Assembly: GCA_964188305.1 (NCBI GenBank)
Contig: OZ076886.1
Origin: Podarcis bocagei
Taxonomy: Eukaryota
DNA length: 64,000 nucleotides
Direction: 5' to 3' (one strand)
Shown: positions 9,373 through 26,741 of the stretch, piece by piece
Layout of the letters: each line of letters begins with the position of its first letter
Numbering within the stretch: the first letter of the stretch is position 1
Notes under the pieces: model-generated
Databases searched by the model: none
The model's input: the letters and a program-made list of their open reading frames with translations, nothing else
What the model was told of the DNA's origin: nothing
Position numbers and translations under genes: made by a program

Positions 9373-9502
9373 NNNNNNNNNNNNNNNNNNNNNNNNNNNN
9401 NNNNNNNNNNNNNNNNNNNNNNNNNNNNNNNNNNNNNNNNNNNNNNNNNNNNNNNNNNNNNNNNNNNNNNNNNNNNNNNNNNNNNNNNNNNNNNNNNNNN
9501 NN
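9373..9502. other. Assembly gap (130 N)
   Basis: Run of N. Confidence 1.
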
Positions 9503-9845
9503 AACTCTGAATCAGGGCTGTGGTATTTAGAACCTGTGTGTGGGAGATGTGCAAAACACCTGCCCAAAGGTGTTTCTAGTGCAGGTACATAGAACGAGCA
9601 ATTATTAATAGATTGCTGCATGATTAATAAGTTTCCTTTGCAATAATTTTGAACTGCTCAGATTAACACGCAGTTGCTTTCAAGTCTTCTTCTCTGTTTG
9701 TTCTAAAATCAATCTTGCTTGCTCTCTGCGTAGACCCAAGAAAATGGGCGGAAATCACTATTCATCGTACTTATCATATTAGTAAGGCAAATGTGCCAGC
9801 CTGGAACGCTCTTTGCAATTCACGTAATATTATATTTTTTTTCAG

Positions 9846-10391
9846 ATTCCTCAGTTTCCCGTCATTCCTGCAGTTACTCCTCTGGCAGGACTTGATAGCC
9901 ACCCTCCAAACTTGTCTGATATACCTGCTGCAAATGCGCCCCCTATACCTGCTCCTTCTCAGTATTTTCCTCCAGCTGTGATTTTACCAAGCTTCCCCAT
10001 GAACCCTGCTCTGACATCAAATTCCCCTGCCCTGCCCATGCAAGCGGTCAACCTTCCTCATACTTCTGTGGCTTCCTTGGTCTTGCCCTGCCAAACAATT
10101 GTGCCAAATATGTCGGCTGCTCCAGTACCATTACTCGCTGTAGCTCCGCCAGGAGTGTCAGCTTTGCCAGCACATCATGCAGTAGCCCAGCTCTCCCAGC
10201 AGCAGATGTACCAGGCTACCCTCCAGCAGATAATTCAGAATGAAGTTCTTCCCTCTCCCCATCACACCCAGAACATGCAAGCAGTTTCACAACAGCAGCA
10301 GCAGCAGCTGCCTCCACTTCCTCAGTCACTTCAACCAAGCATAATTCATCCTTCAGAACAGACTATGTCTGCATCTGGGGCTGGTAATCAG
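9846..10391 (+). CDS. WNK2: WNK2 exon (IPQFPVIPAVTPLAGLD...QYFPPAVILPS...GAGNQ), 546 nt, phase 0-0
   Basis: tttttttcAG acceptor; CAG|GTAATC donor; strong similarity to human QYFSPAVILPS and PLLAVAPPGV. Confidence 0.93.
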
Positions 10392-12096
10392 GTAATCTGT
10401 TTGACATTGGACTTTCTCGGTACTAGAACATAGGAGTATCACTCTTAAGTAACAGTTCTGTAGCCTGTTTCACTATAAAAGCAAGTAGGGGAATTTGCCC
10501 TGCGGAGGTAGAATCAGAAAACCAGTCACTTTGGAAAAGGAATTTGTTTAATAAAAGTTTTAGGGTGATGAAAAGTAGAATATAGCAAGTGGCTGGCAAA
10601 CGATAGTTGATGGGCATGCATCAAGTGCCCCATCTTCTATCTCCTGTCGCAGGAGATGGTACAATATCTTATCAACAGTGAAGAAAATTTTGCTTTTGCA
10701 ATTAAGAAATAAATAAGTAGGTGATCTACACAGATCTACTTATATTTAATTCATTTATAATTTTGCTTATATACCACCAAAATTGCTTTAAAAGCAGACT
10801 GTTCTTCAACAAAGGGATTTTTACTGGGGACTAATTTCAGAAATATTATTTTGAGGATATTTATATATAATAGTAACAAATATTCTGCATTGTTGCAACT
10901 GCAGATTTTTAGGGTCACTGAAGCAATCAATACTAGCATTTACAGAGACAAAAATAGGAGTCTCTTAATAAAACAAGTTTATAACAGAATATAGAATTAA
11001 AGAATATTAACCACAATTTGAGCAGAAATGAGATTATAATGAGAATGAAGACTGCTTAAGAATGATAAAAATGGGAATTTTATAAGAAGCCATTGCATTT
11101 TATCATTATCGTCCACCTTCTTAAAATTCATAACATTTCATCTCAACCTATTGTTCTGTATCTTCAGCTTTACTGTATCTAAGTTTCTGTCTTCAGCCAT
11201 ATATTTGGTACACATAGATTGTTTGTGAAGAACTTAAGTTCATGTGATTCCCACCTACCCTCCACTGAACCAATGGTATTACTCCCATTGGATTCCATAA
11301 TAGTTGCACCAGGTCTTGTAGCTCTCTAAGCATTGCCTGTCACATACTGATAAACGTCTATCAGTTTTGACTTAAATTCATGATTTCTTATTTGTTCTCA
11401 AAGGAGACTTGTGGTACATGATGAGGAGCCTTGACCAGAAGATGTTTATGTTTTATGTCTTGCCATGGGAATGTGAAAAAATTGGCACCCCAGATTGCCT
11501 CTATTTCACTTGCACTGATCACTAAGTTAGTTTCTGTCTTCAGATTTAGAAATCTTGGAACTCCCTTGGCTGTAATTTAACTGTAATGAGTTGTAGCCAA
11601 TAACTCGTCCTACTCAGAGTAGAGCCACAGACAGGAGAAGTCCATTGATTTCAGCAGGCCTACTCAAAGCAGGGCTAGCATTGCCTAGAACCCAGTCTTT
11701 TAAAATGGATCAAAAATATAGGCTTTCCTCATCTTTCCCAAGTGCATGGAGATTGTGAAAGAACTGCTCTACTGGACTGTTGTGTCCACATGTTCCTTTC
11801 AAGGAAGCATTGTTCATTTTCACCCAAAATGAAACAATTATGTAAACTTGACAACATCCCTTTATATTAAATTTAAACTACTTTAAAACTATGTGCAGTG
11901 AATGCTAACAATGCAGGCTATTATTATTTTTCCCTGTCTTGGCGTCACAACACACACTACATATAAAATGCACACAAACATCAATTATAAGGCGCATTAA
12001 TAGTACTAAAAGTGACTTTCTCTGTCTTCTGTGCTTTCCTTTGCTGCTGCTGCCTCTTCTATTGTGTCTCTCTTCTGTATCCCATCCCTGCTTCAG

Positions 12097-12108
12097 CTTC
12101 CTGCTCAG
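12097..12108 (+). CDS. WNK2: Candidate 12-nt microexon encoding LPAQ, phase 0-0
   Basis: 82-nt AG-free pyrimidine tract with TGC motifs; CAG acceptor; CAG|GTAAAG donor; frame-preserving. Confidence 0.6.
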
Positions 12109-12227
12109 GTAAAGCTTGATTCAGTCATTTGAAACTTGCACAGTTCTAGCTTCTTGTACCAAGGAGAAATATATGCATAATGATGTGCCCATACTCAGTG
12201 CTGTTATGGAGAACTTCCCTTTTGTTA

Positions 12228-12295
12228 CTGCATTGCAAGGGGTTGGACTAGATGGCCCTGGGGTCCCTTCCAACTCTACAATTCTATAATTCTGT
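12228..12295 (+). mobile_element. CR1-tail SINE/LINE 3' fragment
   Basis: CTGCATTGCAAGGGGTTGGACTAGATG...TCCCTTCCAACTCTACAATTCTAT, the same tail as at about 5860-5920. Confidence 0.75.
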
Positions 12296-13373
12296 AAATC
12301 ATAGGTCATTTGTACACAAAGAAAAGGCTCTTAAACACTCATTTCAGTGAGTCTCTTTAGCACAAACACTTTGAGGTGTTTGCTTCTTTAACTATGTGGG
12401 ATTCAGTAATATAAGGCCTGAACACGTGATTTTCATGACAAAATGACTGGAATTGGCGCAGAATACCTGTTGCATAACACAAGCATTAGTAGAACTCATC
12501 CTTTAGATTTAGAACTTGGAAGAATCCATTTCATCTGAAGCTGCTCTAGAGACCATCACATATTCCACACAGGGGATTTGTGGAATAAGTGGCATTTTCT
12601 GCCCCAAACATTTGAAGTGGTTTTCAAATGCAATAACCAAATTAATATGTGCAAGGAAACAGAAGTCTGGTTTTCCCACCACCATGTGCTAAACCATGGT
12701 TTAGTGCAAACAAGGAAACGTGTGGGCTTGTGGAGCAGAGACTGTGTCGAATTCTCTGCTCTCCAGCAATTTTGTTGTTGCGCTTTGCTAAATAACTTCT
12801 CTCTGGAAGCCTGCAATTTTCTCGCTCATTCTGAGGCGTGATTTGGCTTAGTGTTACGTGCAAAAAAAGGTATAGTGTCAGCAATGTGTAAAGATGTGAC
12901 ATTATGCTTATTTTGTTGATTGTGGGGAGGACCCTAGTTTTATATTTTAAAAATCTACATCCAGCATTTAGACATTATGACTTGATCCAGTTCCTAATTC
13001 TTGAACTGAGCCCCATTTCACAGAAATAACGATGTTGTGATTGTCTGAAATGCAACCACTCTCACCTAAACTAAAAACTAAACTTCCCTGATGTGAGCTC
13101 TCTCACCGTGGGATAGGTTGGTAATCTTTATCATCCTGACAAGTTGTAAGGAAGGTGTGAATAGATCTGAGGTTTAGCTATGTGGTGAAATAGATGTGTA
13201 TGGGCTCTTAGAAGCTGCTTCATAAAATAAAGCATTCATGTGCAGCAACTTGCCACGCAGATCTGGTGATTTAACTCACAACTCGCTTTAGTTATCTGCA
13301 GTGGTGTGCTGAAAATTTTCAGATCTGAGTGGTGAGTTGTTGCATATGATAAGTCACTGTTTGTCTGAATGGG

Positions 13374-13593: not shown

Positions 13594-13899
13594 ATTATTG
13601 GACACCCTCAGTACACTGTGGATATTGGGACCCAGATGCCTGCATTGCCAGTGCAGCCTTCTGCAGTTATGTCACCACCATTGCAGTTGCAGCCTGAAGC
13701 ATTGCAACCCTGCATTGGTCCAGAAGGTCTTCCACAAAGCACCATTGCTCCATCAAATGCAGCAATGCCTATAGATCATGGGCTGCCTCTCCAGTCTACT
13801 GGTTATCTGCCGCCTCAGCCAGATAATCACCAGCCTCTGGGTCAGCAGGTCCAAACTTCATGCCCAGTTATGCCACAGGCTACAGAATCTTCTCAAGAG
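13594..13899 (+). CDS. WNK2: WNK2 exon (IIGHPQYTVD...TESSQE), 306 nt, phase 0-0
   Basis: Perfect TACTAAC branch point at 13564-13570; CAG acceptor; GAG|GTAGTA donor; matches human ILLGHPAPYAVD...VEPVQE. Confidence 0.88.
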
Positions 13900-14518: not shown

Positions 14519-14568
14519 GAGCATGGAATAATGGAAAAGCAGCAGTCACTATCACAGAGCTGTGAAAG
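14519..14568 (+). CDS. WNK2: WNK2 exon (EHGIMEKQQSLSQSCES), 50 nt, phase 0-2
   Basis: ttccattttAG acceptor; AAG|GTATCC donor; matches human LPQSCES. Confidence 0.88.
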
Positions 14569-24572: not shown

Positions 24573-26741
24573 GTAGAGGGGAACATAATCCCCCCCTTTT
24601 TTGCTGTACCAGATCTCTGGCAGCTGGACCCTTAGGATCCAGCAGATTCTTGGCCAGACCAACTCTGCTCCCAGCACGGTGCTGTTTGATCCCCTGTTTC
24701 AGCTATTGCTGGTAGGAACACCATCAGTTGTAGTATTGACTCTGCCATGCTTTCTGCAGCTGTAGCTCAGGCCTCTGCAGAGGCAGAGATCCTACCCCCT
24801 GCCTGCTGATGAAACACCCACTAGCTCCTAATCCCTTAAAGTATCATGGACTGAGGATTAAGATTGCACCTTTATTCTTTCAAATATAATTATGTTTTAA
24901 AAGGAGGCAAGCATTACACAATGTTATTAATTCAGGCCAAAAAAATCATCATTATCATCAACAACAACAACAGCCAGTATCAACCTGTCACAATAGCAAA
25001 GAAAATATTTAAGGAAAAAATCATAGACATCTTTATACAGAATCTGATTGAGATTTCCGGTTGCCAAATTACCTGACCTGTGTACATATATACCTCTGAC
25101 CTTTCTAAGGAGTCTTAATGTGGCCGGAGGTGGCATGTGCAGACTGCATGACCATCTATGATCTGCAAAACTTTCCCAGTATGAACTAGATGCTATAGCG
25201 TAGATGCAAAAGGTGGAGGTTTGAACATATATACCTATTGTGTTCAAAGTCAGTCCACCCTCATATTTTGAAATCTAGAATACTGAAAGTAATTTGTCAT
25301 GGACTGGGAGGAGGTAAAATGTGTAGATGCAGCCTAATCTGCTGAGGAGCTATACGTATTAAACTCACCATGGGCACATCTCCTTCCTTTAGACCTTGCT
25401 TCCATAGGGCGAATGCATGAAAAAGCAAGGACAATTATTGCACATATAATATTGGAATCAAGCCTACAATTCAAGCTTACACATGTTGGATGTTTTTGCA
25501 TGTAAGCTCTAGTGCAAATCAAACACCCACAGATCAGACACTGGGGCTGATCATGTGCTCACTGTGGGTGGGGCAAGCAGCTGTGATCTCATTCCTTTAT
25601 CACATATATTCAATTGCACTGCCCAGGGAGCCCTTTTAAGGACCAAAATATAGGGTATAAAAGGTTTTATAAGGAAAAGGCTTATCAGAGCTGTTAAGCA
25701 TATCCATTGCGTGCAGATAAACATCCAATTCTTTCCATTAAAGCCTTCTTAATCTTTTTCATTCAATTCTGCAGAGAAATGTGGGAATGGCCAGTTCATT
25801 ACACTGAACTTGTGTCTGAATATTCAAAGGTGGGGGGGGGGGGAGAGCTCCTGTTCTTAGCTCTTGCTTGCAGATTTCCCACGGGCATCTAGTTGGTCAC
25901 TTGTGAGAACAGAATGCTGGATCCGATGGGCCAGCAGGCTCTTCTTTATAGTCTTACATCATGAATGTTGGGATGGTTTCAAAACTTGTATCTGCCATCA
26001 TAATTTACATTGTGTTCTATAGACATGAGCTGTAATCTTGCACATTGCTATGACCCATTGACACAGGGATTTCAGCCTTGTGCAGCATCTATGCACGATA
26101 CCATTAAGCTACGTGTGCGTTGTGTGTGCTTTTTAAATAAACATGTCTGCTCATATGTGTGTCCATTTTTGTTTCCAATGCATTAAACAGGACAAGCTGC
26201 AAACATTACTTCCGCTTCTGTTGGCACACCATCAGGACTCCCTCAGGTATTCTGAACTTACAATTTACCTGTGTATTGTTTTCCTTTCTACACTGTCATA
26301 TCATTCTTAAAGCACTTGGTGTTAAAGCACCTGCTTTACATACAGGAAGTCCCAAATTCAATCTCTCCCATATCAAGATAGGGTTGGAAAAGACTCCTGC
26401 TAGATACCCTGAGTTGCTGCCAGTCAGTATACAGAAATTGACAAATGATCTGGCACACCACAAGGCAGCTTTCCGTGTTCTGGTGTAGTAATCAAAACTA
26501 GGGCTGGTGACAGAGGGTTGTCTCCAGTGCTGCACAAGCCACTCACCCTTTCTCTGCACCCACAGATCTGACTCAGAGGGTCCCCAATCATTGAGCAGAT
26601 TTTGAGGGTGTGTGGTAGGCTGGCGGGGGAAGAGGAAAGTGAAGTTCTGTTGCATAAGTGGAAGTCCATTACACAAGTAACAGCAGCATTAGATACAACC
26701 CATGTTCTCCAACTAGACCATGTTCTTGTATGTTACTTCAG

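Follow-up and report, generated by a model that had tools for sequence, protein, structure and literature searches.

In the 64,000-nucleotide stretch of Podarcis bocagei DNA analysed here (referred to below as the window), the 12 nt at positions 12097..12108 of the + strand (CTTCCTGCTCAG; CTT CCT GCT CAG, read as L-P-A-Q) can, judging from the letters of the window and the matching database isoforms, be taken with high confidence as a genuine alternative cassette microexon of WNK2. The original prediction had proposed a neural LPAQ microexon of the SRRM4 type, and two of its parts stand: a 12-nt cassette exon of WNK2 is present in RefSeq models of two species, and the SRRM4-type cis architecture is present as well. 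Its further step, from the exon itself to inclusion in neurons driven by SRRM3/4, is the reading that we moderately favour, with tissue specificity and factor dependence argued from cis features and from analogy with known microexons.

The 64-kb stretch corresponds to the WNK2 locus, as its protein matches are named WNK2 and carry the Pkinase (PF00069), OSR1_C (PF12202), and CCTL2_WNK (PF24889) domains. This identity was reached by a search with the exon upstream of the microexon, which returned full-length proteins, and by a word search from one of these, which returned hundreds of WNK2-named proteins. Nineteen exons of P. muralis WNK2 were placed in the window by tblastn, and the junction peptide in the window is identical to that of Podarcis WNK2. 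Over 947 aa from six exons, the protein encoded in the window shares 98.3% identity with P. muralis, 97.7% with P. lilfordi, 97.4% with P. raffonei, 95.9% with Lacerta agilis, 95.1% with Zootoca, and 77% with Pogona and Anolis; by these sequence comparisons, the WNK2 of the P. bocagei window is lacertid and closest to that of P. muralis. A bird origin, to which a CR1-like repeat at 12228-12298 had pointed, was rejected on these comparisons.

The microexon, its splice signals, and the two flanking exons lie on the + strand. The microexon is flanked upstream by a P/Q-rich exon of 182 codons (9846..10391), which follows the acceptor ttttttcag|att (AG at 9844-9845), ends in ...SASGAGNQ, and has the donor gtaatc; it aligns to residues 907-1092 of P. 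muralis WNK2 (tblastn) and is covered by RNA contigs X1 and X5. Downstream lies an exon of 102 codons (13594..13899; IIGHPQYTVDIG...), which starts with IIGHPQ after cag. The ~3.2-kb intron between them is in phase 0, so that the 12 nt read Leu-Pro-Ala-Gln in frame; their length is divisible by three, the reading frame is kept, and no stop codon is introduced. The predicted phase 0-0 insertion between GNQ and IIGHP is thus borne out by the frames of the flanking exons and by the RefSeq peptides. In the 2407-residue P. muralis isoform, the insert corresponds approximately to residues 1092-1095, within a P/Q-rich linker that a Pfam scan of the same isoform places between OSR1_C/CCTL1 (591-654) and CCTL2 (1263-1336). 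A recursive splice site and a poison exon were also considered and were rejected, given an intron of only 3.2 kb and an in-frame exon free of stops.

The strongest evidence for the exon comes from annotated isoforms. The GNQ/IIGHP junction was read from database proteins, each flanking exon being searched separately, and lacertid WNK2 isoforms were read from a 90%-identity cluster (15/69 members). Among the matches listed, at least six RefSeq models from two Podarcis species contain the exact GAGNQ-LPAQ-IIGHPQ sequence: isoforms X2, X6, X9, and X15 of P. muralis (XP_077781019.1, XP_077781023.1, XP_077781027.1, and XP_077781033.1) and isoforms X7 and X13 of P. raffonei (XP_053233750.1 and XP_053233757.1). 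Residues and junction both agree with the window, which marks this as the same exon, although these isoforms belong to other species and are automated models that state neither tissue nor regulation. Both species also have the skipped form, in which GNQ is joined straight to IIGHP (isoform X3 of P. muralis and isoform X3 of P. raffonei). In NCBI Gnomon, alternative variants are derived from aligned transcripts or RNA-seq reads, and a 12-nt exon would not be placed by its ab initio prediction; the appearance of such an exon in these models would therefore imply spliced reads. Taken together, the LPAQ models, the isoforms with a direct join, and the corresponding join in RNA contigs argue for a real alternative cassette microexon.

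The RNA examined comprised two raw-read runs and two contig sets (from two studies) of a close relative that differs by ~2% in the intron. The 10391->13594 join (GT..AG, no letters between) was present in both WNK2-expressing contig sets, whose tissue is not given, and represents the skipped form. The join expected for LPAQ inclusion was found in neither of these two sets, in which contig assembly drops minor variants. The raw-read runs X23 and X24 had zero depth on WNK2 exons, and when each flanking exon was searched against transcriptome contigs, all that came back were genomic ORFs, unspliced and reading into the intron. One contig of unspliced RNA from the close relative covers 12016-12207 (192 nt) with no substitutions and a single 3-letter gap. 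Other intron contigs from the same runs show ~2% differences, at which rate ~4 changes would be expected over this segment (Poisson P about 0.01-0.02); the absence of substitutions around the microexon hints at constraint, as far as a single post hoc comparison can.

A separate RNA signal lies ~120 nt downstream of the microexon, where the 3′ end fragment of a CR1-like LINE occupies 12228-12298. RNA piles up on this segment, from hundreds (raw reads) to ~20,000 (contigs), with loose ends diverging before 12228, which marks the segment as a short and truncated copy of a repeat that is abundant and transcribed. An origin of the microexon as an exonised transposon was rejected: 12228-12298 is the sole repetitive part, its copies diverge before 12228, and 12076-12211 shows no repeat-level depth.

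The layout of the splice signals agrees with the original prediction when the sequence is re-read, including the AG-free stretch, the TGC at -8, the exon, and the donor. The acceptor AG is at 12095..12096 and the donor GTAAAG at 12109..12114. Together with the last three bases of the exon, the donor matches CAG|GTAAGT (CAG|GURAGU, with A at +3) at 7/9 positions, the two departures being A at +5 and G at +6, and is predicted from its sequence to be of average strength. Upstream of the acceptor, an AG-exclusion zone that coincides with an extended pyrimidine tract spans 12013..12094 (82 nt, 80% C+T), the last preceding AG being at 12011-12012. No other of the 20 WNK2 acceptors in the window has so long an AG-free zone (82 nt here; median 29 nt and maximum 80 nt for the remaining 19). 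The tract contains a (TGC)4 run at 12042..12053 (-55 to -44 from the exon) and a UCUCUCUUCU element at 12067..12076, which is a PTBP1-type motif and can also be read as the upstream half of a bipartite UCUCUC[N1-50]UGC enhancer, its UCUCUC (12067-12072) lying 16 nt ahead of a UGC at -8 (12089..12091). This UGC, a putative SRRM3/4 site, is located between the pyrimidine tract and the acceptor AG. A candidate distal branch-point region is found at 12004..12016, at or just after the last upstream AG, where TACTAAA and then GTGAC resemble the yUnAy/CURAY consensus; no other branch-point candidates precede the AG-free zone, and these two lie ~81-88 nt upstream. No RBFOX site (UGCAUG) is found near the microexon, and the predicted RNA fold of 11990-12140 is not more stable than that of shuffled sequences (z = +0.59); an unstructured region of this kind would fit an accessible acceptor region, a property that does not discriminate between readings.

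How often such an arrangement arises by chance was assessed by scanning the window on both strands (128 kb) for every AG followed by a GT at a distance of 3-27 nt, which gave ~11,000 pairs. Pairs were retained if the donor matched the consensus at 4/6 positions or more, if the AG-free zone reached 50 nt, and if the pyrimidine content was 75% or higher. Three of the ~11,000 pairs passed, and of these only 12097-12108 combines a length that is a multiple of three with a TGC close by; by a rough estimate, chance would produce ~0.1 in-frame sites of this kind per 64-kb strand. Splice-site architecture alone is therefore suggestive, not decisive, and it is the database isoforms that settle the exon. 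The same rate, which translates into thousands of such sites genome-wide, lends some weight to splicing noise or an annotation artefact, in which a chance AG...GT pair would be used in few transcripts or carried between annotations and would have no selected function. Assembled RNA containing the skipped form only points the same way, as does the fact that the exon is missing, among the matches listed, from the models of P. lilfordi, Lacerta, and Zootoca and from those of all other taxa. We nevertheless consider this account quite improbable, because two separate NCBI annotation runs in two species placed the exon in several isoforms, because the exon and both of its splice sites are intact in the window species, which represents a third lineage, because the 192 nt around the exon are free of substitutions in a relative whose intron otherwise differs by ~2%, and because the reading frame is kept without a stop.

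Tissue-regulated microexons of ~12 nt are mostly neural, and WNK2 is a brain-enriched kinase. Both points weigh against an account that we regard as possible but rather doubtful, in which the microexon is real without being an SRRM3/4 neural one, and is instead included in several tissues or placed under other control, such as PTBP1 relief or muscle or endocrine programmes. Several observations would suit that account: nothing links the RefSeq models that carry the exon to brain, PTBP1-type UCUU/UCUC motifs abound in the tract, the donor looks no better than average, and absence from the models of other vertebrates is unlike a conserved neural programme. A considerable share of microexons is, in addition, SRRM4-independent, and a UGC is not decisive (10.1101/2024.09.17.613571, PMC12871342). 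Against this, the combination of a UGC at -8, UCUCUC, and a long AG-free zone is a specific SRRM3/4 signature (10.1101/2024.09.17.613571).

The SRRM3/4 reading itself builds on this signature. Among SRRM3/4 microexons, 74-79% have a UGC between branch point and AG, and the class is also characterized by a bipartite UCUCUC[N1-50]UGC enhancer and by strong but distant pyrimidine-tract and branch-point signals (10.1101/2024.09.17.613571); predicted branch points at neural microexons are farther from the acceptor (median 45-47 nt vs 34 nt; PMC12871342). The corresponding features in the window are a UGC at -8 between the candidate branch point and the AG, a UCUCUC[N16]UGC arrangement, a long pyrimidine tract, and a distant candidate branch point. 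The same literature reports that a UGC is neither necessary nor sufficient for the SRRM4 response, that strong donors tend to accompany SRRM4 microexons (10.1101/2024.09.17.613571), and that a sizeable share of microexons shows no SRRM4 dependence (10.1101/2024.09.17.613571, PMC12871342). A donor without G at +5, set beside the strong donors typical of SRRM4 microexons, thus counts against the SRRM3/4 reading, and we counted against it as well the missing UGCAUG, the non-decisive nature of the UGC, and the contigs with skipped joins only.

Under the SRRM3/4 reading, regulation would proceed as follows. A 12-nt exon would be too short for normal exon definition, and the distant branch point and long pyrimidine tract at its acceptor would lead to skipping by default, probably aided by PTBP1 bound to the UCUU/UCUC tract. 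Inclusion would follow from binding of SRRM3/4 to the UGC at -8, together with SRSF11 or U2AF2 at the UCUCUC, and from the recruitment of early spliceosome components by SRRM3/4; this would occur mainly in neurons, where WNK2 is presumably most used. At the protein level, inclusion adds Leu-Pro-Ala-Gln to the disordered P/Q-rich linker between the first CCT-like domain (OSR1_C) and CCTL2, and skipping joins GNQ to IIGHP directly. The four residues would most likely cause a small change to the geometry of the linker or to a binding site close to CCTL2.

Besides the Podarcis isoforms, two known systems offer close comparisons. The SRRM3/4 (nSR100) neural microexons are likewise 3-27 nt long and frame-preserving, with a UGC, a bipartite enhancer, an extended pyrimidine tract, and a distant branch point (10.1101/2024.09.17.613571, PMC12871342), and like them the LPAQ exon contributes to a disordered part of a protein in neuronal signalling. 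Unlike typical members of that class, it has a donor that looks average (A at +5) and, among the WNK2 models read, is seen in those of Podarcis only, the likeness being one of cis sequence. Within the WNK family, the HSN2 exon of WNK1 is a nervous-system-specific alternative exon that also lies C-terminal to the kinase domain, within the long disordered part of a WNK kinase (PMC3581481). It differs in being a large exon in a paralogue, at another position, and with a sequence unrelated to that of the 12-nt LPAQ exon.

Beyond the two Podarcis species, no insert was found at the GNQ/IIGHP junction in ~320 other WNK2 models at the level of annotation. Among the matches listed, the lacertid models without the insert come from Zootoca (1), Lacerta agilis (2), and P. 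lilfordi (4). Other squamates without it include Pogona (15), two Anolis species (15), Sceloporus (4), and Rhineura (6), together with Paroedura and Gekko (14) and Sphaerodactylus (9); a further ~240 models are from turtles, birds, crocodilians, marsupials, and monotremes. Deep conservation is usual for neural microexons, and conservation across vertebrates, which is typical of the SRRM3/4 class though not strictly defining, was not found among these annotated models; the lack of an insert in ~320 models, compared with the usual deep conservation, is thus a further count against the SRRM3/4 reading. Annotation often misses microexons. On the sequences compared, the LPAQ exon would be either lacertid-restricted or under-annotated elsewhere. 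A tentative and rather unlikely extension of the first option is that it is a young, lacertid-born exon that arose, once lacertids had separated from other lizards, from an ordinary intronic pyrimidine tract with a TGC microsatellite and was captured by the neuronal SRRM3/4 programme. If true, this would be a rare recent birth in a class known for deep conservation, and absence outside lacertids, if so, would make the exon a usable example of microexon birth.

Other small differences occur at the same junction in birds. Some avian models read GNQ-ITGH and others GNQ-Q-ITGH, a one-residue Q difference of the kind produced by a NAGNAG-type acceptor, and isoforms X6, X9, and X10 of Rhea pennata add six residues (VSVVLQ) through an upstream acceptor.

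With regard to novelty, the LPAQ exon is already known at the level of gene models (RefSeq) and is ordinary in kind. In the literature searched, no paper links WNK2 to a microexon, papers on WNK2 splicing are silent on this exon, and the supplements of microexon papers yielded nothing on WNK genes. The methodological point is that a 12-nt exon was recognisable from its splice-site architecture alone, without tools. The biological gain is small: four residues in a disordered linker of WNK2, encoded by an exon that RefSeq already contains and to which no function is attached.

Several further features of WNK2 were observed in the window. The downstream exon (13594..13899) is also a cassette, as models that join GNQ straight to EH.../EQ... 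(the exon at 14519) skip it; these include P. raffonei X10 and Rhineura X5, together with isoforms from turtle, duck, owl, ostrich, and alligator, and the depth of the 13594 exon in run X5 is approximately half that of the upstream exon. Within the P-rich upstream exon, transcripts of the relative (runs X1 and X5) carry six added letters, CTGCCA, behind 10010, equivalent to two in-frame codons. The intron that precedes the 9846 exon contains 130 N at 9373-9502, reflecting an assembly gap or masking. Farther downstream, a TGC at -7 and an AG-free zone of 55 nt mark the acceptor of an exon that begins at ~15889. The 56-nt WNK2 exon at 26191-26246 has an acceptor with an 80-nt AG-free zone, the second-longest in the gene, and a TGC at -12, and may be another regulated exon; its exact peptide is not matched in some Lacerta and Ensembl models, which could reflect divergence rather than skipping.
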